Shown here in pieces: positions 17,289 to 51,888 of a DNA stretch of 64,000 nt. Made by a program: the position numbers and the translations under genes. Below the pieces are notes generated by a model. That model saw only the letters and a program-made list of their open reading frames with translations, was not told where the DNA came from and ran no database searches. The first letter of the stretch is position 1; each line of letters starts with the position of its first letter. Origin of the DNA: Camelus dromedarius (taxonomy: Eukaryota); contig NC_087469.1 in NCBI RefSeq assembly GCF_036321535.1, positions 13,392,001 through 13,456,000 of the forward strand, in the 5' to 3' direction.

Positions 17289-18245
17289 ATGAGGAATGCC
17301 TCGGTGGTGACCGCGTTTATTCTGCTGGGCATCCCGCACACACACGGCCTGGAGGCCACGCTCTTTGTCCTGTTTCTGTCCTTCTACGTCCTCACGCTTA
17401 TAGGCAACCTGCTCATCCTACTGGCGATTGTCTCCTCCTCTCGGCTTCACACCCCCATGTACTTCTTCCTGTGTAAACTCTCTGTGTGTGACATATTTTT
17501 TCCTTCCGTGAGTTCCCCCAAGATGCTCTTCTACCTCTCAGGGAACAGCCGAGCCGTCTCCTATGCAGGCTGCGTGTCCCAGCTCTTCTTCTACCATTTC
17601 CTGGGCTGCACAGAGTGCTTCCTGTACACGGTGATGGCTTACGACCGCTTTGTGGCTGTATGTCACCCTCTGCGCTACACGATTATCATGAGTCACAGAG
17701 CGTGTGCCATCCTGGCCATGGGGACCTCACTTTTTGGCTGCGTTCAGGCCACCTTTCTAACTACTCTCACCTTCCAGCTGCCCTACTGCGGCCCCAACGA
17801 GGTGGACTATTACTTCTGTGACATCCCAGTGATGCTGAAGCTGGCTTGTGCAGACACCTCGGCCCTGGAGATGGTGGGGCTCATCAGTGTGGGCCTCATG
17901 CCCCTCACCTGCTTCCTCCTCATCCTCACCTCCTACTGTCGCATCGTCTACTCCATCCTGCAGATCCGCTCTGCAGAGGGCCGGCGACGCGCCTTCTCCA
18001 CCTGCAGTGCCCACCTGGCCGCCATCCTGCTGTTCTACATGCCGGTGGTCCTCATCTACCTCAGGCCCACCCCCAGCCCCTGGGTGGATGCAACTGTCCA
18101 GGTCCTGAATAACCTGATCACCCCCATGCTGAACCCCCTGATCTACAGCCTCCGGAATAAGGAGGTGAAATCATTGCTGAGGAGAGTTCTGCGCCCGCTG
18201 GGCTTCCTTCCTGAGCAGCTGTGGAGGTCGGCAGGCGACACCTGA
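17289..18245 (+). CDS. OR10D1: Olfactory receptor, family 10 subfamily D (OR10D1 / mouse Olfr149-like), intact, 318 aa
   Basis: LHTPMYFFL, MAYDRFVAVCHPLRY, AFSTCSAHL and [15 protein letters not shown] motifs. The C-terminal LLFYMPVVLIYLRPTPSPW...GFLPEQL matches my recollection of OR10D1/Olfr149, and it is the first OR after VWA5A. Confidence 0.9.
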   Translation: MRNASVVTAFILLGIPHTHGLEATLFVLFLSFYVLTLIGNLLILLAIVSSSRLHTPMYFFLCKLSVCDIFFPSVSSPKMLFYLSGNSRAVSYAGCVSQLFFYHFLGCTECFLYTVMAYDRFVAVCHPLRYTIIMSHRACAILAMGTSLFGCVQATFLTTLTFQLPYCGPNEVDYYFCDIPVMLKLACADTSALEMVGLISVGLMPLTCFLLILTSYCRIVYSILQIRSAEGRRRAFSTCSAHLAAILLFYMPVVLIYLRPTPSPWVDATVQVLNNLITPMLNPLIYSLRNKEVKSLLRRVLRPLGFLPEQLWRSAGDT

Positions 18246-20896
18246 CCTGCACTTCACAGTTTATAGAACATCTGTGTACGGTTCTCACAAATATTTTTGA
18301 ATCGGAGAGGACAGGTATCATTATGGGTGTCTCCATTTTGCCACGTGGGGACTAAGACGGGAAGAGTTAAAGCGACCTGTTGGAGGACACGCGCGGAGGG
18401 AAGGCTGCAGGGCCGGCTTTCTGACGCTGGGACCCGAGGACGTCCCACGGCTGATGCGGGAAGCGGGGCGCACTCCCCAGCTGCAGTACAGGCGGGCCCT
18501 CGGCTTCTCAGCCCTGTGCTCTTCACCTTCCTGCATCCCCCCTCCCTTTCGTCTTCCCTTCGCCCTGGCGCGTCTTCATCTCAGCCGCAGTGACTGTCTC
18601 CTCCAGGGCCTGCACTGCACAAGCCGTCATTTTACGGGTCTAGGTGCGGTTGGGGAAAGTGGGAGAGGTGGATGCCCAAGGCGACAAGCAGGTCCCTAGA
18701 AAACATGAATACACTGTGCAAAGAGGACTTCAGGCAGGGACCCGAGGCATCTCTCACGAGGGAAGCAGAGGTGCTGGTTACCGTCTCCCCTACAGCCCCG
18801 TCTGTGGGGCTCAGACCTGAAGCAGGCTCCGGCTGTACAAGCGCAGCACGTGGACGGGCCTGGGGGAGGGCCGGTGGGGCAGCCACGGCCGTGACTGCGC
18901 TGTGACGCCGTGCTAGGAACCCGGACCTGGCTCCGCTGTGCGCGGTACAGCCAGGAGGCAATGCTGGGTCCAAGCTGTCATTGTTTCGTATCTTTGGCTT
19001 CTCTGTTCACTGAAAGGGTTTGACTCTGGTCCTCATTCCTACACTTCTTTACTTTTTCGCTGAAATACACTAAGGATGAAGTCTGCTCCTTCAACACAGG
19101 GCACTATTGTCTTCATGACTGAATTCACTGGGAACACAACCACACGTGGGGAATACAGTTGCTGTGAAGATTATTCTAACTGTGATGTAGAGACGGAAGG
19201 ACACTGGAAAGAGGATGATGGAAGAGAAGGGGGTAGAGGCAGAGACCAGTTTCTCCCCTGTCTCTGTACTTCTCAGGATCAGAGAGCAGCCACGGAACCC
19301 GCCAGAGCAGATCAGCAGCACTGCGTGTGCGTCTCCAGGCATGGGGCGGGCTAGCGCTTGCTTCTGGAGCAGAGACAGACTCTTGCCTGGTCACTCCAGC
19401 TCCTAAAAACCCTCTGTGCTGATTCTCCTCTGTTTTTCAGTAAATAAGAACCTAAACAGGAAGGTGAAAATATATCTCAAATGATGTCAAATTTAGTGCA
19501 TCCCAAACCCTTCCTTCTCTAGCCTCTCTGAGTCCATTTGAAGACCTCTTCCCGTTCCTCAATTTCCTGGTTGTAGCTGCTCAGATGGTCAGACTAGAAC
19601 AATTTGTAATAAAAAAAGACGGGACCCAATTCCCTTTCATTTTCACTCATTCAGATGTCATTTGATGAGGAACTCTGTGCTGGGAGCAGGAAATGCAGAG
19701 ATGAAGAAGATGCACTAGCCTACATGAGAGATGTCACAGTCTGCTGGAGAAAAGAAACAGATAAACAACTAGAACATTCCAGGATAAATATTGTGGTCAG
19801 GTGTGAAATAAAACAGAACATGTGGAATATATTTTTATGGGACTGGGGAGGGACCTCACGGAAGGGGTGCTGAACTTCAGGTGTTATTGCTTGTTTTTGG
19901 TTTGAATGAAGTAAAGAATAGGTGAGAAATGCTTTACAGGGAGAAACAACGTGTGTGTGTGCGTGCGCGCGTGCGGTGGGGGGCTGAGCGGTGGTGAGAG
20001 ATAATTCCTTGCATGAGTATCTCTTAACTATTTGTCATCTATGAGTGAATGTCCTTGTAGGAAAACTAAAATTCATCTGACCTGTTTTCAGGGTCCTTCC
20101 TCCAGCTTAGTGCTTTGTTCCCTGGTTGGAGGCCTGTCACAAAGGTGCTGTTTCTCCTTAAACAAACTGACCTCTCTGCCTATCCCGGGGGTTCTAGACA
20201 AGCTGGCAGCTCTCATGTCTTCAGTTAGTGTCTTGAGCTCTCTTTTCACCTAAGCAGGACCCCAGAACGCCAGGCCCAGCCCGGGGTGTGGGGGCCCAGG
20301 CTGATTTTGGTGGTGGAATAAGACTTTTCTGTGTTCTATAATTAAAGGGACACTGTAAGAAGAATTTGGATAGAAAAATGTCAGTGGGAGAAATCCCAAA
20401 TCGGATGACCCATCTAGCAGAGAATTTCATCCACAGGGGCAGAGCAAAGGAAGAGAATCAAAGTCCAGGACCTGGGAGGCCAGAGAAGGACTGCGGGCCA
20501 GAGGACGTTTGGAGAGGAGTGGCTACAGCAGCAGCGGTTCCCGAGACGCTGCATTCAAGCGTGGGCTAGAAAGCGGGTTCCGAGACCTGACCAGGTGGAT
20601 TCTCACTGCTGCTACTCTCTTTGTCACTTGCTCTTCTCTGTCTGGTAATAATAAATAACACCTGTCCACACATCAGTCCAGTTGCCTGCATCCAGTCCTC
20701 ACCCGAGGCCGCACCTCCGTCTAGGGTACTTGCCGCTCCCGCGGTCTGCGTCACCACGCACGTTACCCTTGCACGAACACGGTCTACCGCTGTCTTTCTT
20801 TTCATGAATCTGTAGGTAGCAGGCAGTGGATTTCGGTGCCTTGGGTCCCTAACTTATTGTCACTTTTCCCTCTTTCCAGGATAAAATCTAACTTAT

Positions 20897-21790
20897 ATGG
20901 AGATAAAGAATCACACTTCGGTCAAAGAGTTCACCCTGTCGGGCATCCCACATGCAGAAGGCCAGCAAACTGTGCCCTCTGTTGTGTTCCTCACCTTCCA
21001 CCTCTGCGCTCTGCTAGGAAACCCACTCATCCTGGTGGCTGTGATGTTTGATTCCTGCCTCCACACTCCTATGTGTTTCTTTCTTTGTAACCTCTCTGTG
21101 CTGGATATTGGTGTCTCTGCTGTGAGCACCCCAAAGACGTTCGCCAACCTGCTGGTGAAGAACCGCGTCATCTCCCTGGGGGGCTGCGCGTCCCAGGTCT
21201 TTTGCTGCCACTTCCTGGGCTGCAGTGAGTGCCGGCTCTACACGGTGATGGCCTAGGACTGGTTTGTAGCCATTTGCCACCCACTGCGTTACACCATCAT
21301 CGTGAACCGTCAGGTGTGTGCCGGGATGGCTGCTGGCATCTGGTGTGTGAGCTCTTTTCAAGCCACAATGCTCACTGCACTGACCTTCCACTTGCCATAC
21401 TGTGGGTCTAATGAGATAGACTATTTCTTTTGTGACATCTTTCCTGTTGTCAAATTGGCCTGTGGTGACACCCTCATTATTGAGACAGTGAGCTTCACCA
21501 ACACTAGCCTTCTGCCCACAATGTGTTTCCTCCTCATCCTGACCTCCTATGTCCACATCGTCATCGCCATCCTACAGATGCACACTGCTGAAGGGGGGCA
21601 CAAGGCGGCATCCACCCGTGTTTCCCACCTCTCAGGGGTCACGCTGTTCTTTGGGCCCTGTGCACTCATCTATAGCCAGCCATCTTTGAGCGAGGTTCTG
21701 GTAACCCCAATGCAAATCTTTGGAAATGTCATCACTCCCACACTAAACCCCAACATCTACACTCTGACAAAGATGTCAAGGGAGCCCTGA
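20897..21790 (+). pseudogene. OR family-10 pseudogene
   Basis: Full OR layout in one frame, but MAYDR reads MA*DW (TAG 21254-21256). A 4-nt deletion in LRNK (ctg-ac-aaa-gat-gtc-aag, about 21767) shifts the frame. STC is now STR and PML is PTL. The acceptor ctttccAG at 20878-20879 is retained. Confidence 0.92.
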
Positions 21791-21961
21791 AGAAGCCGGC
21801 TGGGGACCGGCTGTTTCAGAGGCGGTCTCTAGTCCACTTGGGAGTAGAGCTGATTTTTTTCCCTTCCCATTTATGTGTTAATTTGAAAAAAAAAGTATCT
21901 ATGACAGTTGTAAGGTATTTTCTGCCATAGAGACAGGGAAGCAATCCTGATAGAAACCTCT

Positions 21962-22160
21962 GACCTTCAGCAGGCATTTTTCTCTACAGGTCCAGACAGT
22001 AAGTATTTTAGGCTTTGGGGACCATTGATCTCTGCCACAAACACAGAATTCCGGTATGGTAGCACGAAGACAGTCACAGAAAATATGTAAACGAATGAAA
22101 CAAGATGAGGCTTGTTCCAATGAAACGTCAGTTACACAGGCTGCAGGCGGGCTATGCCAT
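21962..22160. mobile_element. MER58A hAT-Charlie element
   Basis: ttttctctacaggtccagacagtaagtattttaggctttgggg...aaatatgtaaacgaatga...cttgttccaatgaaac. Confidence 0.85.
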
Positions 22161-22199
22161 GCAGGGTATAAATTGCTCTGTCACAGATAACGTATTCTA

Positions 22200-23420
22200 G
22201 ATACTAATCTTTTATTGTTAAAATGCACGGCAAATAGTTTTTTACTTTGTGGTTCCTCTCTTTATTAGCTTTAAGGTATTTTTTAATACAATCAATGCCT
22301 TATTTTAACGTGAATGGTTTACCAAATTTTCCCAGTATAATCTCTTTCAGAGTTTTTTGTGTCTTGTTTAGAAGTCATCTATTATCCTTAATTTATGTAT
22401 GTAATTTTTTTACTGTTTTGATTTTCACTTGTAAGCCTTTAATCCATCTGGAATTGACTTTTGTTTGCGATGAGGTAAAAATTCAATTCCTTTCTTTAAA
22501 AAGTATATGAATAGCCAGTTGTCCCAGCGCCATTGATTTAATAGTTCATCACTCTCCCACTGTCCTACAATGCCTCTAATATGCTCTCCTATGATGCCCA
22601 CTCTCTAGGATTCATGTTCTTGTATAATCACTTCCCTTGGATTTAGTGACTTGCTTTTAGTGAATAGAATGTGGCAGAGGTGATGAGATTCCAAAATCAG
22701 GTTATAAAAGACTGGCTTCAATCTTGGGTGTACTGCCCTGTCTTGCTATGTCTTGACTGACTGCCTTGGGAGAAGCCAGCTGTCATGCTGTGAGGCAGAC
22801 CTATGGACAGACCTATGGCTCATCTGCCAAGAGCCATGTGATTAACCTTGGAAGTAAATCTTCCCCAGTCAAGCCTTCAAGAAGATTATAACTCCAGCCA
22901 ACAATTTAACTGCAGCCTCATGAGACTCTGAGCCAGAGCAAACCAGTTAAGCTGTGCCTGCATTACTGACCCACAGAAACTGGAATAATAAATAGTTATT
23001 TTAAACCACTAATGTTTGGAGTAATTTGCTATGCAACAATTGAAACTAGTACATATGATGATCTATATTTTCCATGTCTTTTTTGAGTCTGTTCTAAGTT
23101 GTATCTTTCTAAGATTTTATTCAGTTTATCAGTTTTCAAATTTATTTGAAAATACTTTAATATATCATATAATCTGCTTAGTCCATGTGCTTTTGTCCTA
23201 TTTTCTATTCCTCATGTTGTTTCTATGTGTCATCGCTCTCTTTTTTCCCCACTAATCATCTTTGCAAAGGCATAACTATTTTCTTAGTATTTTCAGAAAG
23301 CCAAAATTTGGCATTGTTGATCCTTTCTCTTTTTATTTTCTCTTGCTCATTAACTTACGCTTTTATCTATTTATTTTTAGTTCTTTGAAAACTATGTGGC
23401 TTTCTGCTACATACAAGATC
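22200..23420 (-). mobile_element. Old L1ME-type fragments split by an MLT1 LTR
   Basis: tttaatccatctggaattgacttttgtttgcgatgagg, ccagttgtcccagcgccatt and ttttcagaaagccaaaatttggc are antisense L1 ORF2. Confidence 0.75.
22575..23053 (+). mobile_element. MaLR solo LTR (MLT1F/G-like)
   Basis: gacttgcttttagtgaatagaatgtggcagaggtgatg...gcagcctcatgagactctgagccagag...tttggagtaatttgctatgcaacaattgaaactagtaca. Confidence 0.88.
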
Positions 23421-23939
23421 AACAATTCTTACATTTCAAACATTAGTTCTCAAGGGACAAAGTTCTTGACTCCCGTTACAGAAGAGAAATTCCAGATGCA
23501 GCAGACATGCTTTGTGCATAGTTGTATGAGTTATTAATAAGAATTTGTTGATTAATACATGGATACAATTCTGGAAAAATCATGTGGAGAACAATTCCTC
23601 GCTCAGGGAAGCCAGCTCTGCCAATTGACAAAATTCCTTGCTGAAGAGTCTGACAATGGAAATTCTATTTCTAAACCAAAACATCATAGTTTGAAATGTA
23701 GAAGAGCTATGGACAAACTGAGGCAAAGTATGTGAAATCAGATGTTAAAAGCCTCAGACTTAACGATTATTATTTCCTATTCTAAAAATAAACCCCAAAA
23801 CCGAGGGAGTAGCTTCTCTATGTCCACGATGATTGAGCTGTACCTCTCACCTTTTCCTGTACTTCCCAAGGTCAGTCACAGAGATAAAAAGCGTAGATAT
23901 GGCTCTGTCTTATTCACATCACAGTCGTGCCACAAGGGG

Positions 23940-24287
23940 GAAAACCACATTGTGTTTCAGCTAGATCATTTACCCACTTCTAATTACTCCCTTTGCTCAA
24001 CAACCCCCTTGAATCAGGACTCATTCAGGAAGGGGATCCCAAGGGCCCCAAGAGCATTTAAATTTCCACATATGAGAAAACAACGTAGCTATCAGTGTCT
24101 TGGAAGAAATCTTTGAGAAGACAAGAGGTACTTTCAGCTTTCTGTCATTTAATCTCAGTTTATTTCACTAAGAAGAGAGACCTTTCCAGATGATGGCAGG
24201 AGATCCCTGACCCTGGCTTAAAGGCAAATATGGATGGATGAGCCCAGAGAGGCAGATAATAAAAGAATCCACTCCCTCCTTGTGAGT
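23940..24287 (+). promoter_or_regulatory. Candidate OR10D3 promoter and first exon
   Basis: TAATTA at about 23981, tandem O/E (EBF) sites TCCCAAGGG (24037-24045) and CCCCAAGAG (24046-24054), an adjacent ATTTAAAT, a GTGAGT donor at 24282, and acceptor cctaccccAG at 25791-25792. Confidence 0.55.
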
Positions 24288-24809
24288 TACAGAAGTGCCA
24301 CCCTCATCTCTTTAATTTCTACTCCTCTTTTCTTCCTCAAGTTTCCAGTGGAGAGGGGAATCTGGAGTCCTTGGTTTACAAATGGTCTCAGAGTCCAGGA
24401 TGAAAAGGACTTGGGGCTACTGGGCACAAGAATAGGACATCGTTTGCTTGGTTTGTTATTCAACTCACCATGTTGGCTTGTCAACTAAAAACTCCTTTCT
24501 TGCTATTGCCCTTTATAACCAGAGATTTGGTCTTAATTCAAAGAGATTAAAAGGTTGGACCCTCTAAGTGAGCCTATACCCTGACACCTTTTGTCCAATT
24601 CTTTGTCATGTGCGACTCCTCTTGATAAAACACCCGGGACAAACTCTGACTATTCAGAGGATGGTGCAAAGAATGAACAGGTATATGATTAAGCTTCTTT
24701 ACAGGGTTGTTTAGGAGTATTAATAGCTGATGGTGTCATATAAGCCCTCGTACAAGACAAAACAACTGAATGATATCCTTTCTTGCCAGTTACTGAGCGA
24801 GTCGCTTCA

Positions 24810-24930
24810 CTGTTTCATTCATCAAATATTTATTAAGGATCTACTCTGTGCCGGGCACCGCTTTCTGCACTGAGGATAGAGAAGTGCACGTGAAAAGGCA
24901 TTTACTCTTCTAGACTTTGTATTTCAGTAT
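24810..24930 (-). mobile_element. L2 3' end
   Basis: ttcattcatcaaatatttattaaggatctactctgtgccgggcacc. Confidence 0.75.
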
Positions 24931-25813
24931 ATGTGTGTGGTGGTGGTGGTGGTGCAGGGGCAGGCAGGCTGGATTTCCATTGCTTACTAAGGAGGAGTGG
25001 GAACATTTTTAGAGATTTGTGACATCAAAAGGAAAAGCATGAATAACACGGGGGTGGGACGGGTGCAAAATCTGACAAGATTAGTAACATCATAGCCCAT
25101 CACAGATGCACATAATGGAAAGACTCATGTTAAAAAATAAAGAAAGAAAGAAGAATTCAGATCCCTAGTTCTGCCACATACAGTGACCTCAATGTAGAAC
25201 TGTGTAGCCTGTCTAATGTCCAGATGTTTTCTTTTCTAAAGAGTTACTGTGTGGATTAAATGAACTGAAATCGTGTTGTGTAGACATTTCAAGTGGTAAT
25301 GTGGTGATTATTTAACCCTACGGCTCACCAAAAAACAGAGATAAGAATAAAATATAATTTTGTCAGCTGTAGCGGTTCACAAATAGAGTGATTCTCAGGT
25401 CACAGTTCGTACCCCCAGAGATATAATGAGCCCCAGCGTGACTGTGAGGCTTCTGATACCCCTCCATTCTGAGGGTGCATATTTGTGGGGGTACCACCCT
25501 TCCTGTTAAAATCCTTGCTCCAACATATTTCTTTTAAAATATTGTTTTAATAAAGGATGTTTGCATTTGGAATCAGCACAGGAAAAATATTTGTTACAGA
25601 AATTATCAAGGTGGCTAAGGTAGCTACATTCCAGTTAAAATGCCCTGAAACTTGGTTCGTAAGTAGTGTTTCCGTAACTCCTAGCCCAAACACTGTCATT
25701 TAAATCACACATCTCATTTCCCAGTGTGTTCACTCCATTGACATCCAGCCGGGACCTCCTTCCCTGTCTCCTGCTCCCTCTTCCTACCCCAGGACTGGGT
25801 CTCTCGGAGGGAG

Positions 25814-26746
25814 ATGGAGAACCGCTCTGCGGTGACTGAGTTCATCCTCCTGGGCATCCCGCACACAGAGGGGCTGGAGCCCGCACTCTTTGTCCTGTTC
25901 TTGCCCTTCTACGCCTGCACCCTGCTGGGAAATGCATCCATTCTCACGGCTGTTCTTTCTTCCACTCGCCTCCACACACCCATGTATTTCTTCCTGGGGA
26001 ACCTGTCTGTGTTTGACATGAGTTTCTCTTCCGTGACCTGTCCTAAAATGCTGCTCTACCTCGTGGGACTGAGCCCGCTCATCTCCTACCAGGACTGTGT
26101 CTCCCAGCTCTTCTTCTTCCACTTTCTTGGCAGCATTGAGTGCTTCTTGTACACCGTGATGGCCTATGACCGCTTCACTGCTGTCTGTTACCCTCTGCGG
26201 TACACAGTCATCATGAACCCTAGAATCTGCGTGGCCCTGGCTGTGGGCACGTGGCTGTTAGGATGTGTCCATTCCGGTATCCTAACCTGGCTGACCTTCA
26301 CCTTGCCGTATTGTGGTCCCAATGAAGTGGATCACTTCTTTTGTGATATCCCAGCACTCTTGCCCTTGGCCTGTGCTGATACATCCCTAGCCCAGAGGGT
26401 GAGCTTCACCAACGTGGGCCTAATATCTCTCGTCTGCTTTCTCCTCATCCTTGTATCCTACATGCGAATCTCCATCTCCATCTTGCGTATTCCATCAACA
26501 GAGGGCCGCCGCCGTGCCTTCTCCACATGCAGTGCCCACCTGATCGCCATCCTCTGTGCCTATGGGCCCATCATTACTGTCTACCTGCAGCCCACCCCCA
26601 ACCCCATGCTGGGAACTGTGGTCCAAATTCTGATGAATCTGGTAGGACCAATGCTGAACCCTTTAATATACACCCTGAGGAATAAGGAAGTAAAATCAGC
26701 CCTGAAAAAAATATTGCACTGGACAAATCACATTCCTGAGATTTAA
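25814..26746 (+). CDS. OR10D3: Olfactory receptor OR10D3 ortholog, intact, 310 aa
   Basis: Closely matches recalled human OR10D3 (LFVLFLPFYACTLLGN...SVTCPKMLLYL...LIAILCAYGPIITVYLQPTPNPMLGTVVQILMNLVGPMLNP). All OR motifs are intact. AATAAA at 27062. Confidence 0.95.
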   Translation: MENRSAVTEFILLGIPHTEGLEPALFVLFLPFYACTLLGNASILTAVLSSTRLHTPMYFFLGNLSVFDMSFSSVTCPKMLLYLVGLSPLISYQDCVSQLFFFHFLGSIECFLYTVMAYDRFTAVCYPLRYTVIMNPRICVALAVGTWLLGCVHSGILTWLTFTLPYCGPNEVDHFFCDIPALLPLACADTSLAQRVSFTNVGLISLVCFLLILVSYMRISISILRIPSTEGRRRAFSTCSAHLIAILCAYGPIITVYLQPTPNPMLGTVVQILMNLVGPMLNPLIYTLRNKEVKSALKKILHWTNHIPEI

Positions 26747-27427
26747 TAAGAACGGATGGATGGGTTGATGACATGGAATTCTTTCTCCCTCAACATGGGA
26801 AATTTTATTCTGGAATCCTTACATGTGGCTTTGCAGTGCATGCTGAATGGTGTGGACCAGTATGTCATAATACTTCATCACTTTGTCTATTTTATTTTCT
26901 TGTGTTACCGAAGTCCCCTCCCCACAGCTTCAAAATAACATCATCTGGGTTGTTGTTATTTCGCTTTCCTTCTATGGAAAACCTCCTGCCACTAAAAGAC
27001 CATTGCACCATTTCTCCCACCTTTCCCAACAATGCGTGAGACCAAGTTTATGAGGAAAGGGAATAAACAGAAGAAAGCAACTTTAAATAACTGATTGGGA
27101 GCATGACAGGACCTTCTCTTTTAATATTAACAGACTAATTGCCAGAGGCAAAATGAAGTGTTCTCTTTTTCCTTCTCAACTGTGTAAAAAAGGGAATAAC
27201 TTAGGATTTGTCAATGGACATGTTCTCCTCTGCACCCCATGATTTTTCTCATCCTTGCTTTCTCTGCCTTAAGGTTCTTAGGCAAATAAGATGAGTTCCA
27301 ACTGTGTAAGGAAAGTGAAAAGCTTTGTGGCTAGTATTCTAGGCTGGATGTTTCCATTTCACTGTCCACTAATAGAGTGGTTATTAATGTGATAAAATGC
27401 ATTTTTATCAGGTCAGATAATTAGACT

Positions 27428-27640
27428 GAGCCAGTGGTTTTCCAAGTATGATTCAAGGAGCCCCAAGGCGCCAGTGAATTTATTCTAAGGCTTCATGTTA
27501 AGTATAGAGAAAATTTCCCTTTTACCTGCTTTACCTGTTGTATTTCTTGGCAAAATTCCACTGGGAAAAGTTGGAAGGCCTCTGGAGTATGTAATCTCCA
27601 TGGCATCCTCCAAGACTAAGGATTTCCTTCTACCCATGAC
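27428..27640. mobile_element. Degenerate hAT-Charlie-like DNA element
   Basis: Starts cagtggttttccaagtatgattcaaggagcccc, the typical CAGTGGTT terminus. Confidence 0.45.
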
Positions 27641-28174
27641 TTTAAAGGTGTTGTTGCCTTTTCTTTAGCACCTGGATCTGAACCTTCAATATGCACTTGA
27701 GCTTGTTAACAGCTCAAGCTATGCTTGTTCATGCTTCAGGGTTCATTTAATTACTTACCAAACAATTCTCCTCTCCTAATAGAAACAATTATAAAGGTGA
27801 TGTTTATTATACTTAGTCTCAGGTAACCTCTTCCCTATTCGATCTACATCAGAGACACCTACTTTGGTTCACAGATGGCTACAAAGCAGCTCTGTGGAAG
27901 GCACTGATTAGATCAGAAACATTACAGAAGGCAAAGGTGGGTTTCACTGGATCCACTGCATTCATTGCCTGGACTTCACATAATTTTACCTCAACCCTTT
28001 GTACCTCTGGCCTAATTAGCGCTGTATTATTACAGTTCCAGCTCGAGTACCTCCTGATTCACTGTGATATAATGCAAGTTCACCTCCACAGTCCCCTCTT
28101 GAGAAACGCTAGATGTGAATCCTAACAGCAAACTATCCTTTGAGAATCTTCTGAAACCCTAGCAGCATCAGGTA

Positions 28175-34760: not shown

Positions 34761-34809
34761 GCTCAAACTATAAGTCAGAATGCAGTTTCTCTTGTTATTT
34801 TTGTTTGTT

Positions 34810-40858: not shown

Positions 40859-41794
40859 ATGACAGAAGGAAATCATTCCACAGTGACTGAGTTCATCCTC
40901 GCTGGACTAACAGAACAGCCAGAACTCCAGCTGCCCCTCTTCTTCCTTTTCCTGGGAATCTATGTGGTCGCGGTGGTGGGGAACCTGGGCATGATCACAC
41001 TGGTTGGGCTCAGTTCTCACCTGCACACCCCCATGTACTGTTTCCTCAGTAGCTTGTCCTTCATTGATGTCTGTCATTCCACCGTCATTACCCCCAAAAT
41101 GCTGGGGAACTTTGTGACAAAGAAGAATACCATCTCCTACCCTGAATGCATGACCCAGCTCTATTTCTTCCTTGTTTTTGCCGTCTCGGAGTGTTTCATG
41201 CTGGCTGCGATGGCCTATGACCGCTACGTTGCCATCTGTAACCCCTTGCTTTATAACGTCATCATGTCCCATCAGGCCTGTTTCTCTCTGATTTTGGGAG
41301 TGTATATTATAGCCTTGGTGTGTGCATTCTCTCATACAGGCTGCATGCTTAGGGTTCACTTCTGCAAACTTGATGTGATCAACCATTACTTCTGTGATCT
41401 TCTTCCCCTCCTAAAGCTCTCCTGCTCTAGCACCTATGTCAATGAACTACTCATTCTATGTTTTGGAGCCCTTAACATCTTTGTCCCCATCCTGACCATC
41501 CTCAGCTCCTACATCTTCATCATTGCCAGCATCCTCCGCATCCGCTCCAAGGAAGGCAGATCCAAAGCCTTCAGCACGTGCAGCTCCCATATGTTGGCAG
41601 TTGTGATCTTTTTTGGATCTGCTGCATTCATGTACCTGCAGCCATCCTCAGTCAGTTCCATGGACCAAGGGAAAGTGTCCTCTGTGTTTTATACCATTAT
41701 TGTGCCCATGCTGAATCCCCTGATCTATAGCCTTCGGAATAAAGATGTCAATGTTGCCCTAAAGAAAGTGCTAGAAAGAAGAATATTCTTGTGA
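40859..41794 (+). CDS. OR8G1: Olfactory receptor family 8 subfamily G (OR8G1-like), intact, 311 aa
   Basis: [24 protein letters not shown] and [25 protein letters not shown]...[21 protein letters not shown] match recalled human OR8G1. Confidence 0.88.
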
Positions 41795-42879
41795 TCAGAA
41801 ATAATATGAGGATGACTTTTTATTCTACATCATTGTCTATTATATTGTATGAATTGGTGTGTTTAATATATCCATATATTTAGTGGGATTCTATTAACAT
41901 TATTTCTTACTCCTATGGCCTTGGTGCCATTTCTTTGTGGATGTTTCTCTGATAAATATCATTGAGACACAGATTAAAAGAAATTCTAAAGATGACTTGG
42001 ATACATGGACCCACTAGTGCCATCAAAATTATCTCTTTCTCTTTTCTTTCATACAATTGATAAAAACCCTCTATCAATGAAAATATTTTCTAGCAGTGAT
42101 TATCAACCTCCTTTCTTCTACCCAATCAAAAAATAACAAAACCATAGCAACGTGATGACTGTATTCTTTACCTTTTGCACATCTCTACTCTGGAAAAGTC
42201 TCTTTCCCTTCATCTCCTACCGCACACCTTTGTTCTCTGAGTTATTTCCTCTTTTTCCTCCTTAAGAAACATGATTAGACTTTTAAAATCTGAGTTACAG
42301 ACCTACATTTGTTGTTATTGTGCCCAATCAAATATCCTCCTGCTTTGGCATCTATTACTCTAGTTGTAACTGTCTGTTTATTGTCAAAATCCACGCTGGA
42401 CTGTGATCTCCCTCAAGGTAGCCTCCTGTCGTGTGTGGTGCACTGCCATATCTCAGGGTAGCAGAATGCCTGCTACCTAGTAGGTCCTTGATAATTTTCT
42501 TGGTATTTATTTCCCTCTATAAAATATTTATATGAAAACCACTATGTACCCAATTCTGTCTTCCCCCTTTAACTCCTTCAAGAGCTATAAATGGCTTTTT
42601 TGGTTTTAGTTCAAATCAATTAAGTGTAAGTTTGGAGAATTCTTCAAAGATCTGTAAGATAACTAGTAAAATTCTTACTTGTTTCTATACAAGGACTGAG
42701 AAGTACTAATTCTGAATTCCTTCGGTGGCAAATTCCAACACAGATGTGGTAATTTTTGAATATCTGATTTCTTATGTCATTAAAATCTGTTGACACCAGG
42801 AAGTCCCTGAAGCAAGTCTAATTTATTCTTGAATTCAAGTATGCAGCAATAGAGAATCAAAAAAATTTTAAGAAGATTT

Positions 42880-43060
42880 TAAGTCTAATGGGTCAGCATA
42901 GCAAATCACGTGGTAAAGTGAGGCCTGACTTTTTAGATTTAACTCCAAGGACATGATCTATGGAAGAAAAACACTGGTGAGATGGAACTTATTAAAACTG
43001 AAAACTTCTACTCTGTGAATTACACTGTCAGAAGAATGTAAAAAGCTCACATCAGAGGTA
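42880..43060 (+). mobile_element. Old L1 ORF2 fragment
   Basis: actccaaggacatgatctatggaagaaaac...ggaacttattaaaactgaaaacttctactctg. Confidence 0.7.
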
Positions 43061-43850
43061 ATGATTTGATTGTGAGGAAAACAGAATCTTTTTATGTATT
43101 TTTTTTTTTTTTAGAAAAGAGAGAGTGGAACAATCATTCATTATTTTCGCTCTCTTTCCAGCCCTATATTCAAGAAATACTAGTTCCAAGACCAGTAGAG
43201 CAGAGCGGCCAGGCTGCTGTAAACTGCCTTTGCAACCCAGACATGGAACTGTGGTGAGCCTCACTGAATTACTGCGGCTTCTGCACAGACTCAAGGACTA
43301 GCTCCCACCAGAGGGCTCAACTTGTCCCTGGATTTGTCAAATACATAAGCTCTTATCAGGGCTTTAGATTTTTGTCTTCTACTATGGAGCTTCCCTTTAA
43401 ATGGGTGGTAGATTTCATTAATGGGCAAATAAAAATGGGCAGAGGTCTTACTGTGAAAAGAATACTGTACGTTATTACACTAAGAAAGAGAAGTGGGTCA
43501 ACTAAAATACTGCAAACCTAAAAGCTAAGACGTAACTTACAGATATGGATTTGAAACACTCTTTCTAGGTAGCAAGTCTGTTTAGGAAATCAAGTGATTT
43601 AAAAATGTTGCTTCAGTTTTATGATCATAGTAAGAGCATAGAAAAAAGAAAACAAAATAAAGTAGAACAAGTTAATTAAACTGGAGAGAGAGAGAGAGGA
43701 CAGGACAGACCACAAACCTATGTATTAGAAAATGGTAACTTAAAGGCCAGGAACCCAGGACTCTAGTCACTGAAATATTAAAGCCACTGAAAAAAAGTAA
43801 ATAGCACACATTTCCCTTAAAGACTGAAAGATCTTAAGATCTTTAATCTT

Positions 43851-44197
43851 AATGTTGTGTCAAATTCCAGTGTAGAGCACAATTTTCCAGTTATACATGA
43901 ACATATATATATTCATTGTCACATTCCTTTCTCTGTGAGCTACCATAAGATCTTGTGTATATTTCCCTGTGCTATACAGTATAATCCTGTTTATCTATTA
44001 TACAATTTTGAAATCCCGTCTATCCCTTTCCACCCTCCGCCCCCTTGGCAACCGCAAGTCTGTATTCTATGTCTATGAGTCTATTTCTGTTTTGTATTTA
44101 TGCTTTTTTTTTTGTTTTTTTTTTTTAGATTCCACATATAAGCAATCTCATATGGTATTTTTCTTTCTCTTTCTGGCTTACTTCACTTAGAATGACA
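43851..44197 (-). mobile_element. Young camelid-type L1 3'UTR fragment lacking its polyA end
   Basis: aatgttgtgtcaaattccagtgtagagcac...ggcttacttcacttagaatgac is antisense to the same region as 9900-10260. There is no polyT at the left edge. Confidence 0.88.
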
Positions 44198-44239
44198 AGT
44201 TCAGCATAATCTACCACATTATGCATTCATTCCAAATTA

Positions 44240-44800
44240 AAGTATTTAATCAGGGGAAATGAAAACATAAGTTTATAGAAAGATTTGTATATAAAGATTA
44301 ATAGTAGCTTTATTTATAAAAGCCCAATACAAGAAGCAGCAAAAGTGTTGATCAATAGAAGACATTGTGTGGCTTATTATCAAATGTATGCTACTCATTA
44401 AGAAAAGCAATGAACTACTGATATGCCCAGCAACATGGATGAATCTCAGAATAATTATTCTAAGCAGAAGGAGCCAGACACCCACCTGCTAAAAGAGTAC
44501 ATTTATATAATCCCATCTATATAAAATTCTAGAAAAATCAAACTAGCCTATATTGGCAGGAAAGAGATCATTATTTGCCTGGGGACAGATGTGGGGGATT
44601 ACAAAGAGATAGGAATAAAAGTTTGTGCATGATGGGTATGTTTATTGCCTGATTGTGGTAATGGTTTTACATAAGTGTACACATTTATATTTTTATATAC
44701 ACACATATATGTACACAGAGAGATGGACAGATAAGGAATACTAGTGTATTTTTAAATAAACAGATAACTATTTCTATTACATCTCAATAAAGCTCAATAA
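44240..44800 (+). mobile_element. L1MD/ME-type 3' end
   Basis: aatgaactactgatatgcccagcaacatggatgaatctcagaataattattctaagcagaaggagccagacac. Confidence 0.85.
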
Positions 44801-47800
44801 ATTTCAAATAAAAATGTGGTATTGATTAAACAAAAAAATAGACTGGAAGCTATTCACTAAGTACATTTAATCACATGTAATCTGTACCTGATCACTAATT
44901 CAGCTAAGTCTGTCTTTTGTTGCTCTGTTTTAATGCATAAGCCTAGATATAAAAAAACCGTATCAATTACATTACTGGATGTAGAAGATTTTCCAATACT
45001 AATTACACTAAAAATCTCTTGTCAGGGAAGTTCAATTAATTGTTTGCTATTTTCAAACTAAAAGCTTCCATTCATTTCCTAATTTATCCTAATACACTCT
45101 CATTCTGTACTTTCTATTCATATCTAGTTATAACCTATAAAATGTCAGAACAGAAAAACTCCTTCATGATTTATGTTCCTCTAGCTATTTAAAAAGAGAT
45201 AACTCCATAAGTTCACTGTGCTTTCTTCTTTTCGTTACTTTGGAAAAAAGAATTTCTACAGCAATTACCATGATTCCAATATATATTTATAAAGCTATCA
45301 ATTATATATGTAATGTGTATATACATATATATGTATTCTTCCACATATATGAGTATATATGAAAGGAAAACTAACTGTAGACACTCATAGGAGTTTTCTT
45401 CCTCCTACTCACAGCTCTTTCTTATTCTCCATACACCCCAGGGTATCTAATTCTAGTCAGAAAATTCTCTAAAAAGATAAAACTTTTTTACTTTACAAAT
45501 ATTTTAGGTTTTCTTCAACAACAAAAATGATAACAAGGAGACTGAGGCAAAGGGAGGTTAAACACCTTTTTAAATGTTACACGCTTAGAAAAAAACCAGA
45601 GTCAGGATTAGAGCCCAGCCAGGCACACTGACTTCAATCAACTTTCCCTTGACCACGCCAACATAAAACAGTAGCCGCGAATCTCACACAGATGCAACGA
45701 GAGTAGAGAGCAGTGAGTTACGAATTCCACCTTGGGGGCTCTGGGAAGGCTTTGTAGGAAAAGTTACATGAGAGTCAGACCTTTAGTGATGAACAAAATC
45801 TGTCATGGAACAGATGAAACGAAAGAATAAATGAATGTCAGGCAAAGAGAATCTTAGGAAGTCCCTGTCAGTCAGAGGGCAGTGAACACCTCCACGTGGT
45901 CATGCATAAAAGGGAGGAAATAATGGTGGAAAGAAAAGTAGACAGCAGAGTTGAATTTTATAAAGGGCAGGACACCGGGTAAAACTAAGGAGTCTTAACT
46001 GTAGTCTTAGCTGTGGACACAGGGGATCCATTCCAGGAATGACAGGTAAGCTTAGTCTGCACTGACTACAGGGCCAGGCCAGGCATCACACCCGCATCCG
46101 CACTGTATTAGCATAATAGAGACAGCTCTGCTCTCCTGCTCTGCTTCGTGCATCATATGCACTAAACTTTGCGTATGAGCCAGACCAGTCATGCTCAGAG
46201 GCCTCCTCTGCCCCGCAACCTAGCTCCTAGCCCTTTTCTTCCATTTTCTGAGCACATGCAGCAAATATGGTGAAGCTGGAACAAAATAATTCGATCTCTG
46301 GTTTCTCTGTAGTTATTCATTCCACCACATCACAAAATTTTCCAAAACTCTGTTTTATCTCCTGTATGTTACCATGCTGACTGATACACCTCTGGAGTTC
46401 TTGAATTTTCTAAGACTCAGTGCATAAGCCCTGTGCATGCTAATCTGCATATGAGCTGGAAAGTGACAGGGGTAAAGAGGTAAATAAGTTTCAGGAGAAA
46501 CAGGAAATCTTTAGAAAATGACCCTTAGTCTGAGTGAGCAACAGGCCCACAACAACTGCTGGAAGAACTTGCAACAATCTTAGAAGAAGAGAATAAGGGC
46601 CGTTCCACCTTACTGAGTGGGAAACTTCACAGTTAGCAGGATGTGACTGACGCTCACGCACATGAACCATGTGACTGCTGGGCTAATGGTCAGTAAAACA
46701 CTGAGAACCTCATCCTCTGTGCACAGAATCACATGCTCATTATCACTGAGCTTCCTTCAACCACCGAAGTTCTCCAGCTAATGGTCTGACATCCACTCAG
46801 CCACGTATTTTGTGTTCCATCCCAGTGTTAGTAAAATGTTATATCCAGTCACCTGAAACCAACCAACCGCAAATGCTCACCTAGAGGCACCCCTTCTGCT
46901 CAGACTCCAAGACACGACCTTGTGCAAAGTGCCCTGTACTTCTCTCCCGAAACCTCTTCATCTCCTTGCCTGGCTCCTCCTCCTCCCTTCAGTGGAGTCT
47001 TTAAGGAGTCTCTCAACCATATCATTTAAAAAACATTTTTAAAAGAAGATATAAAAATGAAATTGGGATGAGGTATTTGAAGTACTAATTTATGGGGTAA
47101 AAATATATAGTCAGAGAATATTACAAATTATGCTTGTGTGCTTACCTTCCCTGTTTTGTTTACTTAAATGGCACTTTTATAACAAATGGAAATCATCTGA
47201 CCTACTATAGTTCACTCTCCAGATTTAGTGACATCATGTATTCTCTTTGTTTTAGGTCTTTTTACAATATCCTTTTTTTTCCCTTAATGCTGAGTAATAT
47301 TTAGGTAATCCTAGAGTTTGTCTTGTTTCTGATGTGTGACTGGAGTATATTCCAAAATACAAGTATGAATCTGTTCCATATTTTTGGCACCAGGCTTGCC
47401 ATTACCAAGTGAATGGGTTGATAAGCCAGACAAGCTCAGTGTTAAAAGATGAAGATGCTATTACTGGATGAGACCCCTAAAGAGAGCCATCAAGACCCCT
47501 CCTTCTACTTGACTTGCTAATAGCCCCAATAGCTTTTTTAGAATCAGTCATTTATGGTGATGAGAGAGAACTGAACTTGAAGGGAATTTTCAAGGTTATT
47601 TGGATATATAAAGGAAGTTGACTAGTATAAATTATTCATGAAAGGTTGTTTCCTGAAACTGAGCTTAAGATGTATTAATGCCCATACTCATGATGCATAA
47701 ACCATCATGGATTCAATCAAATTTGTTAAGAATATGAAAGCCAGACACACTCATTTCTGTACTTTCTTCATTACCTGATAACTCAAGGTTATTCCAAGCC

Positions 47801-49140
47801 ACTGGAAAGGGGCTCCAGAGATTTAATCTGAGCCATCTGGAAACGAAATAGTCTGACAAAATTGGATGGAAATGTATTAATGAGCAGAAGTCTTCTTCCT
47901 TCAATTTCCTCACATTCTAAGAAGGATTTTGTATGTTAGGTCAGTCATACCAAATTGTAAATCTTTTTTTTTAACATAATGTAACTTCTGTGATCTTTAA
48001 AATGCATAGAAGAATGTACAGTAGAAGAGCTATACAAAATGTATTCCATATAGATCTGAAATACAGATCTACAGATTCTTGAAAGTAACTTGATTACTGC
48101 CTAATTGATATGTGAGACAATATAACTGGTAATACATGCTGCTTTATTAGATCGGCACACTAAGACAAATTATCACGGAACAATGTTGTATTGGGGATTG
48201 TTGGAGATGCTGGTACATTTAAGATCTTATAGATTATGAACAATGTGAAAAGACGGTTTACAAAGGGCAAATACCAGTGTTTGCTGCTAAAGCCTCTTTT
48301 GTTGATGAAGTTAGACATTTACTATTAGAAATGACTTGTTATGATGACAAAATGAGAGGCCTTTAGGAAAGACAGGTATTTTAATAATTAATAAAGGTTT
48401 ATACTTAAATATCTGTGAAACTTTTCCTCCTTTGAATTGTGCAAGACACTACATTTAACTGTTCCCATGACACTGGTTGGAATCATGAGATAACATCTCT
48501 TATGATTTAGCCAGATCAGCCTGTCTCCAGTTTGTTATTTAGGAATGCTCTATAAATAAAAACCAAGTGGAGGAGAACTGTGTGGTATGAGCGTAATATG
48601 ATGCCCCTTCAGAGGTTCAGCTCTTACCCTGAGGAGTATGACACACAAATCTCTACTATCAGCCGCAGTATCTAGAATCCGCCCTAGATCTTCCTCTCCA
48701 AACTCCTGTTGGATGTTTTTTCCATATGTATATCCTGAATCATACAAAATAGTATCCTTCCAGAGTTATATTTAACTCGTCAATCTTGGAGGTATCAGAT
48801 TCCAAGAGCCATGCTTATGTATCTCCACTTTCTTTCATTTTTTTGACTATCGTCTACCACCCACCTTGTGCACACACGCAGTAATACGTGAACACAATTT
48901 TTACATAAATGCTTTTGTGTTAATATAAATACATAGACTTGCAAAGGTAAAACTTCAACTCAACTTAAAAAGTGGGATTTATTTATATAAATGAGATCAC
49001 TTCAGTCCAGTTAGGTGGCAGGGGGGCAAAGTCTGTAAACTTACTGAATATTGGAAATCATATACAGCAAATAAGGGGGCAGGCTGTTATTTCTAGATGA
49101 TGCAAATTTTCATTTATGTTACACCATAAATTGAGGTATG

Positions 49141-49341
49141 CTCTTGGGGACCTTCTTTAGGAAATTTCTCTGTGCTGTGGGACTAATTGACTCAAATATA
49201 ATATGATCTTGAGAGACTCATCTCCCTCTCTGGAGCTCCAATCTACTACCTAAACTTTTCAGAGAATAGTAGACAAAGACAGGAAATGGTTGTGGGGTGG
49301 CCAGGAAGACCTCTCCAAATCTAAAGAATGAATCTGTGAGT
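49141..49341 (+). promoter_or_regulatory. Candidate promoter and first exon of the second OR10D gene
   Basis: O/E-type CCCCAAGAG on the minus strand (49141-49149), CTAATTGA at about 49183, GTGAGT donor at 49336, and acceptor ttctaacAG 2 nt before ATG 50956. Confidence 0.4.
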
Positions 49342-49379
49342 GGTTTTCCATCACAAAGGGGCAACTGATTTCTGTGTTA

Positions 49380-50720
49380 AGTTTTTTGGGAGGCAGTGGA
49401 GGTATAGTGGAAAGAACCTTAAACTTGGAGTCAGAAGATTTGGGTATGACTTGCTCTTCATTTTTCAGTTTTAGAAAAGTTTTTAACTCTCTGAATGTCA
49501 GTGTCCTTTTTTGGAAATTGGGGTTAATTACCATGACCTTACAAGAACTTTGTGAGACTTAAGAGATCATAAAATTATATTATAACAATTAAGCAATTAA
49601 AAAATAACTATTTATAATTACCATTATTTATGAATGAATGTTAGAAAGTCAGAGTTGGTAATTTAGAAGATCTTCCTACTGTTCTTTGTGTGAGACCCTA
49701 CTGTACATCTAACAGATGGAGGAACTTGGGCAATTTGCTTAAACTCCTGTGCCTCAGTTTCCTAATGTGAAGGAGAGTTAACACTACCTGTCTCATAGAG
49801 TCGTGGTAAGGACAAAAGGCACTAATGTACATAAAGCACTCAGTATAGTGTCTGGACATGTTTGTATTAACATAAATCAGGATGTTTGTCACTTTTTTAA
49901 AACTACAGATCATACACAAAAGCATCCCAAAGAGTTTCCATCATTCTAAGGCACTCTTGTTCAGTGGAATTCTGGCCTTCCACATGGCATGTGTCTCTAT
50001 TCTACTGAGATATATTAAGAATGGTATTCAGTTATTACTGTAACTCATATAGCTATATTCATAATTCTTACTGTTATACAAGTGAATAGATTTATCATAT
50101 TTAAATCAAAGCCACCTGTTCACTAGGAGTAATATTTGTTAAGCTTTATTGTGCCTTCTCAGATATATTTGAAAAGACGAACTATGTAATAAAGTCAAAG
50201 AATTTCAGAGGACATTAATGCTGCATGTAGGATAACTCTGCGTGCAAATTAGAAACACAGGGTCATCACATCCCTGAAAGAACAGCATCTTACCCCTACC
50301 TAAAACCTTACAGTAGTGAGAACACAATCCTTCACAGGGAAACTTACCCATGATTTATTTTTCTATACTGAAATTAAAATCTAACTTTTTATTAGTTCCA
50401 CTCTTTTTTACTGGTTATTCACCATAGAAAAGCATGCAGCAAATCTACATAGCACCTGAAGACAAGTGTCATGTCTCTGCTTCTCTAAGCCACATTTCCT
50501 GGGAGCTTTCACAGTAAAAGGGTTAGAAGCTTTAGCTCTGGAGTCAGACTTGAGTTTTAATCTCAGATGAGTTACTTTCTAGCTACGTGATCAAGTTACT
50601 AAAACTCTGTGCTTTTATTTCCTCTTCCACTTAATAAGGTTGTTCTGAGATTTAAATGTAAAAATAAAAGAACATAAAAATAAATTAGCATAGCACTTAC
50701 AATGCTGTCAATATTAGCTG
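49380..50720 (+). mobile_element. Three MIR fragments (about 49380-49620, 49640-49880 and 50510-50720)
   Basis: aacttggagtcagaagatttggg, aaactcctgtgcctcagtttcctaatgtgaa and gctctggagtcagacttgagttttaatctc. Confidence 0.8.
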
Positions 50721-50955
50721 TTATTTTTAATAAACTATTCTCCGATGGGATGATTTAAAGCCACTTTACATCTTTATAATCTTCCTTTGAACGTATTTAG
50801 GTTATTAATGTCGTTTGTCAGGTACACTTGCTAAAAGAACACATAACGTGATAATTAAATAATTGCTTATTATTTATTACATAGCTTCTCAGTTTGACCA
50901 GTGTTCACACCTTGGAGATCTGTGTTCTCTTTTGAAGTCCAATGTTCTAACAGAG

Positions 50956-51888
50956 ATGAGGAATGCCTCGGTGGTGACCGCGTTTATTCTGCTGGGCATC
51001 CCGCACACACACGGCCTGGAGGCCACGCTCTTTGTCCTGTTTCTGTCCTTCTACGTCCTCACGCTTATAGGCAACCTGCTCATCCTACTGGCGATTGTCT
51101 CCTCCTCTCGGCTTCACACCCCCATGTACTTCTTCCTGTGTAAACTCTCTGTGTGTGACATATTTTTTCCTTCCGTGAGTTCCCCCAAGATGCTCTTCTA
51201 CCTCTCAGGGAACAGCCGAGCCGTCTCCTATGCAGGCTGCGTGTCCCAGCTCTTCTTCTACCATTTCCTGGGCTGCACAGAGTGCTTCCTGTACACGGTG
51301 ATGGCTTACGACCGCTTTGTGGCCGTATGTCACCCTCTGCGCTACACGATAATCATGAGTCACAGAGCGTGTGCCATCCTGGCCATGGGGACCTCACTTT
51401 TTGGCTGCGTTCAGGCCACCTTTCTAACTACTCTCACCTTCCAGCTGCCCTACTGCGGCCCCAACGAGGTGGACTATTACTTCTGTGACATCCCAGTGAT
51501 GCTGAAGCTGGCTTGTGCAGACACCTCGGCCCTGGAGATGGTGGGGCTCATCAGTGTGGGCCTCATGCCCCTCACCTGCTTCCTCCTCATCCTCACCTCC
51601 TACTGTCGCATCGTCTACTCCATCCTGCAGATCCGCTCTGCAGAGGGCCGGCGACGCACCTTCTCCACCTGCAGTGCCCACCTCACTGCCATCCTTCTCT
51701 CTTTTATGCCAGTGGTTCTCATCTACCTGCAGCCTACCCCTAACCCCTGGCTTAATGCAACTGTTCAGGTTCTGAATAACCTGGTCACCCCCATGCTGAA
51801 CCCCTTAATCTACAGCCTGAGAAATAAGGAAGTGAAATACTCTCTGAGGAAGCTGCTACAGCACCTGGCCTTCCTTCCTAAGAAGTGA
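50956..51888 (+). CDS. Olfactory receptor, OR10D subfamily (OR10D5/OR10D4-type 3' end, OR10D1-identical 5' part), intact, 310 aa
   Basis: ATG at 50956 follows a splice acceptor, and all OR motifs are present except AFSTC, which reads TFSTC. Codons 1-243 are nearly identical to the 17289 gene; the 3' part is distinct (LLSFMPVVLIYLQPTPNPWLN...LPKK). AATAAA at 52077. Confidence 0.88.
   Translation: MRNASVVTAFILLGIPHTHGLEATLFVLFLSFYVLTLIGNLLILLAIVSSSRLHTPMYFFLCKLSVCDIFFPSVSSPKMLFYLSGNSRAVSYAGCVSQLFFYHFLGCTECFLYTVMAYDRFVAVCHPLRYTIIMSHRACAILAMGTSLFGCVQATFLTTLTFQLPYCGPNEVDYYFCDIPVMLKLACADTSALEMVGLISVGLMPLTCFLLILTSYCRIVYSILQIRSAEGRRRTFSTCSAHLTAILLSFMPVVLIYLQPTPNPWLNATVQVLNNLVTPMLNPLIYSLRNKEVKYSLRKLLQHLAFLPKK

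Follow-up and report, generated by a model that had tools for sequence, protein, structure and literature searches.

In a 64,000-nucleotide stretch of the dromedary genome (Camelus dromedarius, assembly GCF_036321535.1, contig NC_087469.1, positions 13,392,001 to 13,456,000 of the forward strand; hereafter the window), two olfactory receptor (OR) genes of the OR10D type, which we call A and D, share a nearly identical block over the 5' part of their coding sequence and differ in the remainder and in their flanks. We interpret the block as the product of non-allelic (interlocus) gene conversion from A to D, between old paralogs and in the stem lineage of the Old World camels, and give this interpretation a probability of about 0.92. 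The two genes lie 33.7 kb apart on the same strand, with A upstream and three other OR loci between them (a pseudogene and the genes called B and C below). The parts of the pair are, in window coordinates and with coding positions (nt) counted from the ATG:

17289-18245, plus strand: gene A, an intact open reading frame (ORF) of 318 amino acids (aa), OR10D-type, the ortholog of Or10d1b/Olfr149 and the putative donor.
17289-18016, plus strand: the putative donor copy of the block, codons 1-243, from the N-terminus to the RAFSTCSAHL motif at the start of transmembrane helix 6 (TM6).
18017-18245, plus strand: A's own 3' module (TM6, TM7 and tail), unconverted, which falls with the A genes of hippo, Bos and Mustela in the tree.
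50806-50955, plus strand: D's own upstream flank, the 3' edge of which is the 5' limit of the tract.
50956-51888, plus strand: gene D, intact, 310 aa, a chimeric OR10D-type gene and the putative acceptor.
50956-51683, plus strand: the converted tract in D at its maximal extent, with 3/728 mismatches to A and with Camelus-derived letters common to A and D.
51588-51657, plus strand: the portion for which transfer from A to D is shown directly (nt 633-702, 16 sites).
51658-51683, plus strand: the interval of the Camelus 3' breakpoint (nt 703-728), coding for FSTCSAHL and uninformative.
51684-51888, plus strand: D's own 3' module (TM6, TM7 and tail), unconverted, which clades with the D genes of other mammals.

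The first-pass annotation of this DNA had described a block of 728 nt with three mismatches that begins at the ATG and ends at codon 243, and this description proved exact to the base. The copies at 17289-18016 and 50956-51683 differ at 3 of 728 nt, namely 17657/51324 (T in A, C in D), 17684/51351 (T/A) and 17991/51658 (G/A). The differences at 17657 and 17684 fall on third codon positions and are synonymous, the one at 17991/51658 changes codon 235 from GCC (Ala) in A to ACC (Thr) in D, and those at 17657 and 17991 are CpG transitions. The two bases directly before the ATG are CT in A and AG in D, and the first difference after the block is at nt 729, the first base of codon 244. Over the 202 coding bases of nt 729-930 the identity of A and D is 77.7%, and among codons 244-283 those ending in A or T number 4 of 40 in A and 15 of 40 in D; the mismatch classes and the codon counts, both of which had been reported before, were all confirmed on recheck.

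The differences between the genes are strongly clustered. Only 3 of 48 lie in the first 728 of the 930 aligned nt, giving a P value of 1e-26 under uniform placement and of 1e-13 to 4e-18 when the null was taken from where along the gene A and D differ in hippo, Bos and pig. When the polymorphic sites were permuted in GENECONV style, 0 of 100,000 replicates reached the observed identity run. A blastn comparison of 16 kb around each gene found no similarity between the loci outside 17278-18218 and 50945-51885 save interspersed repeats, and the 3-kb flanks of A and D gave no blastn match on either side. The similarity stops 11 nt upstream of the ATG and at the end of the coding sequence, and the flanks are not as similar as the genes, as they would be in a segmental duplication. 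The camel flanks match those of their own alpaca orthologs at 94-96% identity (95.5% for the 3-kb upstream flank of D, dromedary versus alpaca). The earlier statement that the flanks are unrelated and that the block is no simple segmental duplication is borne out. Immediately upstream of the ATG the A and D types are weakly alignable over ~75 nt, each keeping its own conserved sequence, and the flank of D carries a splice-acceptor-like TTCTAACAG two bases before the ATG. The 5' limit of the tract coincides with the end of the homology between A and D.

The chimeric structure of D becomes apparent when the genes are seen against their relatives. Protein searches and alignment showed that the A-type and the D-type each form an ortholog group across eutherians. 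The A-type C-terminus (LLFYMP..RPTPSPW.DAT..GFLPEQL; Or10d1b/Olfr149 in the source names) is common to dromedary A, Bos, hippo, horse, Pan, aardvark and sloth, and the D-type C-terminus (LLSFMP..QPTPNPWLNAT..AFLPEK) to dromedary D, pig, cow, hippo, horse, panda, sloth and elephant; the range of each type takes in aardvark or elephant, sloth, primates, carnivores and artiodactyls. The last 150 nt before the ATG likewise sort by gene type, up to position -1, in five lineages (camel, alpaca, hippo, Bos or pig, and Mustela). Because the ortholog groups are eutherian-wide and the flanks sort by type, A and D are old paralogs and no recent duplicates. In hippo, the 5' parts of A and D differ by 5% and the 3' part by 18%; the hippo "D" lies 476 kb from hippo A in opposite orientation, and the distance in camelids is 34-42 kb on the same strand.

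We compared the A loci of the dromedary assembly CamDro3, C. ferus, C. bactrianus, alpaca, hippo, Bos mutus and Mustela lutreola, and the D loci of CamDro3, C. bactrianus, alpaca, hippo, pig and Mustela lutreola. Among the A and D genes of dromedary and alpaca, nt 1-645 contain 10 sites that sort by species and 0 that sort by gene, and nt 729-930 contain 0 that sort by species and 41 that sort by gene (P value = 8e-11, Fisher test between the two segments). Along the three segments nt 1-645, 646-728 and 729-930, A and D differ at 0/645, 1/83 and 43/202 sites in CamDro3 and at 1/645, 16/83 and 43/202 sites in alpaca. The maximum-likelihood trees follow the same division. In the 5' segment, A pairs with D within alpaca (support 97/92), Camelus (94/91), Mustela (97/96) and hippo (87/92), and the approximately unbiased (AU) test rejects a clade of camelid A genes (P value = 2.4e-8). 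In the middle segment (nt 646-728), Camelus D falls with camelid A, and alpaca D with the D genes of hippo, pig and Mustela, a clade of camelid D genes being rejected (AU P value = 0.0011). The 3' segment sorts by gene type, and the AU test rejects a clade of Camelus A and D (P value = 0.0026). On either side, A and D each retain the flank of their own ortholog group, as expected of an exchange without crossover. Separate trees of the 5' and 3' parts had been proposed by the first-pass annotation as a check on ectopic conversion, and they conflict as conversion predicts; together with the AU tests and the permutation test, this discordance upholds its reading of D as a chimeric gene.

The three mismatches are younger than the block itself. 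Those at 17657 and 17684 are private to the A haplotype of the present assembly, and the A genes of CamDro3, C. ferus and Bactrian camel carry the letters of D; the one at 51658 is a dromedary-specific change in D, Bactrian D having G. The blocks of A and D were therefore 728/728 identical in the Camelus ancestor. None of the variants that A and D have in common is confined to a single Camelus species, and the 3' breakpoint is common to all Camelus. This absence of species-specific shared variants, the ancestral identity and the common breakpoint place the last camel event before the dromedary/Bactrian split; it falls between the split from alpaca and that of dromedary and Bactrian. For scale, the flanks diverge by 0.6-1.2% between dromedary and Bactrian and by 4.4-6% between dromedary and alpaca. 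The conversion is thus real, as first proposed, but "recent" only in the sense of being older than the dromedary/Bactrian split.

The camelids do not share a single event either. When the sites sorting by species were polarised with six outgroup genes, A and D were found to have in common Camelus-derived letters at nt 15, 103, 219, 370, 393 and 649 and alpaca-derived letters at nt 241, 252, 267, 290 and probably 441. Because each of the Camelini and Lamini lineages has its own derived letters in both paralogs, each homogenised the block after their split. The 3' ends of the tracts differ as well, lying at about nt 632-650 in alpaca and within nt 703-728 in Camelus. In Camelus, nt 702 is the last converted site that is informative and nt 729 the first that sorts by gene; within nt 703-728 the camelid A and D genes vary at one position only, nt 703, through the dromedary-specific change of D. 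Judged by these letters, the homogenised 5' part of the camelids does not stem from one event, and in alpaca nt 1 to about 632-650 were homogenised independently.

Some observations concern variation at the A locus within Camelus. Over A and its 3-kb flanks (14289-21245), the present assembly is 0.7-0.9% from CamDro3 and equally far from Bactrian. Upstream of A, only 0.13% separates CamDro3 from Bactrian, and the distance between the two dromedary assemblies is 0.07% at the D locus. A deep haplotype would account for this gap, as would Bactrian introgression at A in one dromedary assembly. Gene B was weighed as the donor of a micro-conversion that could have produced the two close changes at nt 369 and 396 in the A haplotype of the window; the idea was dismissed, as B matches nt 369 and not nt 396. 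In the new assembly of C. bactrianus only, A has a 3-nt deletion and two adjacent substitutions at coding nt ~227-231 (SP to W), either a real indel or a local assembly error.

The direction of the transfer is seen most clearly near its 3' end. At 16 sites within nt 633-702, Camelus D has the letters of camelid A and alpaca D differs; the D-type letters at these sites are kept by the D genes of alpaca, hippo, pig and mink. Of the 14 sites in nt 646-728 that are diagnostic between hippo A and D, alpaca D matches hippo D at 10, and camelid A and Camelus D match hippo A at 10. For nt 633-702, these patterns show directly that A donated the sequence and D received it. In nt 1-632 the support for this direction is indirect and comes from a GC-bias signature. 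We counted derived changes from A or T to G or C (weak to strong, W>S) and the reverse (S>W). The camelid block, polarised against at least five of six outgroups, has 22 W>S and 1 S>W changes, the private 3' end of A has 12 and 1, and that of D has 0 and 4 (P value = 3e-4 for the block versus the 3' end of D, and 2e-3 for the 3' end of A versus that of D; Fisher tests). Control lineages lack such a bias, their W>S:S>W ratios ranging from 3:11 to 14:9. The GC content peaks locally at 0.50-0.53 at 18-22 kb, on the side of A, and is 0.36-0.43 around D. Since its ratio of 22:1 resembles the 12:1 of A's 3' end and not the 0:4 of D's, the block carries the substitution signature of the A locus, and transfer from A to D is the most likely direction for the tract as a whole. 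The earlier claim that A overwrote D accordingly holds in two grades: it has the direct site patterns behind it for nt 633-702 and, for nt 1-632, only the GC bias, which had been the annotation's own argument and is here put into numbers. The AT-to-GC bias of A and the GC peak just downstream of it (18001-22000) look like the mark of a hotspot of recombination or of GC-biased gene conversion (gBGC) at the A locus.

The camel event has counterparts in other mammals. We typed 125 proteins by seven C-terminal residues, of which 44 were mixed (extra paralogs in rodents, marsupials and afrotheres), and used 34 eutherian proteins of clear type that were chosen by hand, 17 A and 17 D, leaving out horse A and two low-quality whale models. 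On the tree of aa 1-215, the A/D label of these 34 proteins needs 12 changes, a number equal to that of shuffled labels, and at least 7 of them are forced by well-supported branches; the AU test rejects monophyly of A (P value = 7e-10), and the paralogs pair with each other in camelids, Mustela, bear/panda and walrus. On the tree of aa 244-310, 1 change suffices. Between the A and D genes of Mustela lutreola there are 5 differences in nt 1-600 and then 6-12 per 60 nt, a case of independent homogenisation, and the same 5' homogenisation is seen at the protein level in bear/panda and walrus. The view that the camel event is one episode of a long concerted evolution confined to the 5' two thirds, the 3' third having evolved as two lineages, is well supported by these comparisons. 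The 3' third may have escaped through selection, a divergence barrier or both.

Several points weigh against the proposed transfer from A to D. In nt 1-632, the sites diagnostic between hippo A and D split 16:16, the letters of the block matching either gene equally, and the phylogeny gives no direction; across 30 mammals, aa 1-228 contain no residue diagnostic of A or D save a weak F/Y at 175. The GC bias could stem in part from GC-biased repair during the conversion between A and D and not from a regime of the A locus. The positional orthology of D varies among species, as the hippo arrangement illustrates, and the single change on the C-terminal tree is partly a matter of construction, the types having been set by C-terminal residues, although the upstream flanks support the types independently of those residues. 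The lack of direction in nt 1-632 and of diagnostic residues leaves room for another history, in which nt 1-632 were homogenised from D to A or by several bidirectional events and only nt 633-728 came from A to D specifically in Camelus; the shorter alpaca tract stands alone without the distal portion, and recurrent concerted evolution makes multiple events expected. Such a history sits poorly with the W>S excess that the block shares with A's 3' end and not with D's, and, given the unbroken ancestral identity over nt 1-728, one tract from A to D is the simplest account. We therefore regard a reversed or bidirectional origin of nt 1-632 as unlikely and retain A as the most likely donor throughout.

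Explanations that dispense with conversion fare worse. As the 728-nt block exceeds the length of short reads, the 5' part of D might be a collapsed or mis-polished consensus derived from A. The same junctions are, however, present in two independent dromedary assemblies, in Bactrian (old and new models) and in a C. ferus fragment of 2013. They also occur in a Logan short-read contig of 2.3 kb, the product of which passes from A-type ...SAEGRRRAFSTCSAHL to D-type TAILLSFMP...NPWLNAT, with A-type SAEGRRRAF preceding the D-type part. The architecture recurs in alpaca, where the 3' breakpoint and the derived letters are that lineage's own, and D has private substitutions inside the block (nt 703 in dromedary; nt 205 and 653 in Bactrian). 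In addition, 99% of the 31-mers sampled from 49800-52800 are present in 20 sequencing runs from 8 studies. Based on five assemblies and one short-read contig, misassembly is very unlikely. A single unequal crossover inside the coding sequence would also yield a hybrid with a 5' part of A and a 3' part of D, as might a recent partial segmental duplication. Here, though, the upstream flank of D is its own as far as position -1, with conservation that reaches from camel to pig and a mustelid, and a single unequal crossover is excluded for that reason. The 3-kb flanks that are unrelated between A and D are 94-96% identical between dromedary and alpaca, both genes are present together with the intervening pseudogene, B and C, and two exchange points at homologous positions amount to conversion; we consider an origin by duplication or crossover highly improbable. 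That no transfer took place, and that purifying or convergent selection holds the 5' part identical, could be argued from the conserved receptor motifs encoded by the block. But the synonymous sites are identical too (0/645 differences in CamDro3, 1/645 in alpaca), the block differs at 10-11 sites between camel and alpaca, the orthologs of other mammals differ by 10% over its region, and lineage-specific synonymous changes are common to both paralogs, which makes the chance of selection having acted by itself negligible.

The mechanism that we propose for conversion from A to D is one of double-strand break repair and draws on established knowledge of gene conversion. In the stem Old World camel lineage, after the split from alpaca and llama, a homologous repair event at D would have used A as its template and overwritten D from the start codon to codon 243 without crossover. 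Homology would have bounded the tract, its 5' stop lying where the similarity of A and D collapses, 2 nt past the splice-acceptor-like CAG, and its 3' end being resolved within the conserved stretch coding for FSTCSAHL, just before a segment diverged by 22% into which the heteroduplex may have been unable to extend. Synthesis-dependent strand annealing and the dissolution of a double Holliday junction without crossover would be fitting routes. The predicted product joins TM1-TM5 and the third intracellular loop of A to TM6, the third extracellular loop, TM7 and the tail of D. A conversion mediated by complementary DNA (cDNA) was considered and is unneeded: the two exonic bases before the ATG are unconverted, the 3' end lies within the coding sequence, and the loss of homology explains the limit.

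The window contains six OR loci, all on the plus strand, downstream of the end of VWA5A. Besides A and D, its features are:

506-637 and 3093-3224, plus strand: last coding exons of VWA5A, with 95-100% identity to the VWA5A portion of a fused C. ferus model.
20897-21790, plus strand: OR pseudogene with a stop within MAYDRF.
25814-26746, plus strand: gene B, an OR with 66% identity to A and D.
40859-41794, plus strand: gene C, OR8-like.
61574-62500, plus strand: gene E, OR8-like.

No other OR lies between VWA5A and gene A downstream of it, and this position accounts for the VWA5A-OR fusion models found in the annotations of camel and hamster. The exact protein of A is present in NCBI and clusters with the camelid entries "olfactory receptor 10D1B-like/149"; that of D is encoded in GCA_036321535.1 and CamDro3. 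The D product has precomputed Pfam matches to PF13853 (7tm_4) and PF00001 (7tm_1), as have its relatives, and the intact single-exon ORF of ~310 aa, the 7tm_4 domain and the OR motifs are those of a class II OR of family 10, subfamily D. The pseudogene has ~51% identity to A and D, reads MA*DWF in place of MAYDRF and has degraded TM6 and TM7 motifs; in alpaca and C. ferus, the annotation gives a 297-aa product at the orthologous position. At 13765-13940 the window has 176 consecutive N, an assembly gap or masked sequence.

Gene conversion among clustered ORs is already known, and the A/D pair fits the known picture of OR evolution and changes nothing in it. As summarised in the review PMC1995454 (citing Sharon et al. 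1999, Genomics 61:24), non-reciprocal transfer in OR clusters yields mosaic receptors or homogenised paralogs. The camel case is alike in being a non-reciprocal transfer between paralogous OR coding regions of one cluster; it differs in that the camel pair is very old, its members are 33.7 kb apart with three OR loci between them, and its 5' part has been homogenised independently in several lineages and its 3' third never. In the literature searched, we found no paper on conversion in the OR10D A/D pair.

Two other systems invite comparison. The fetal gamma-globin genes HBG1 and HBG2, for which conversion was reportedly described by Slightom et al. in 1980, are the classic pair that combines a near-identical 5' part with a divergent 3' part, a sharp boundary between them and repeated independent conversions in different lineages. 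The globin boundary lies at an intronic simple-sequence tract, and HBG1 and HBG2 are adjacent duplicates with homologous flanks. The likeness is in tandem paralogs that are nearly identical 5' and divergent 3' and in the recurrence of conversion; unlike in the globins, the limits of the A/D tract lie at the edge of homology (the ATG) and within a coding motif that is conserved, and no similarity is detectable between the flanks. Most descriptions of gBGC concern allelic recombination hotspots. The excess of derived AT-to-GC changes in the camelid A gene and in the copied block (12:1 and 22:1) resembles its outcome, but for A and D the source may be either an allelic hotspot at A or biased repair during the exchange between A and D.

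The camel event is a dated case, placed between the Camelini/Lamini and the dromedary/Bactrian splits, that comes with a direction, both limits and a GC bias travelling along with the sequence, and the process to which it belongs recurs over ~100 million years (My). As a consequence, whole-gene trees of the OR10D pair will give the false impression that camels, alpaca, mustelids, bears and walrus each duplicated the gene within their own lineage, and the true orthology is reported only by the last 200 nt and the flanks. The pairs are natural matched chimeras, with identical TM1-TM5 and two conserved alternative modules of TM6, TM7 and tail, and could be used to probe the role of the last two helices in odorant tuning. 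One might go on to see the pair of OR10D1B and OR10D1B-like as a two-module system of eutherians, in which the TM1-TM5 part is homogenised time and again in many lineages and the two forms of TM6, TM7 and tail have been kept for ~100 My by selection against conversions that cross the boundary; we hold this idea tentatively, as possible but doubtful. If it is true, the genome would maintain receptor pairs with the "same pocket scaffold, alternative TM6-7".

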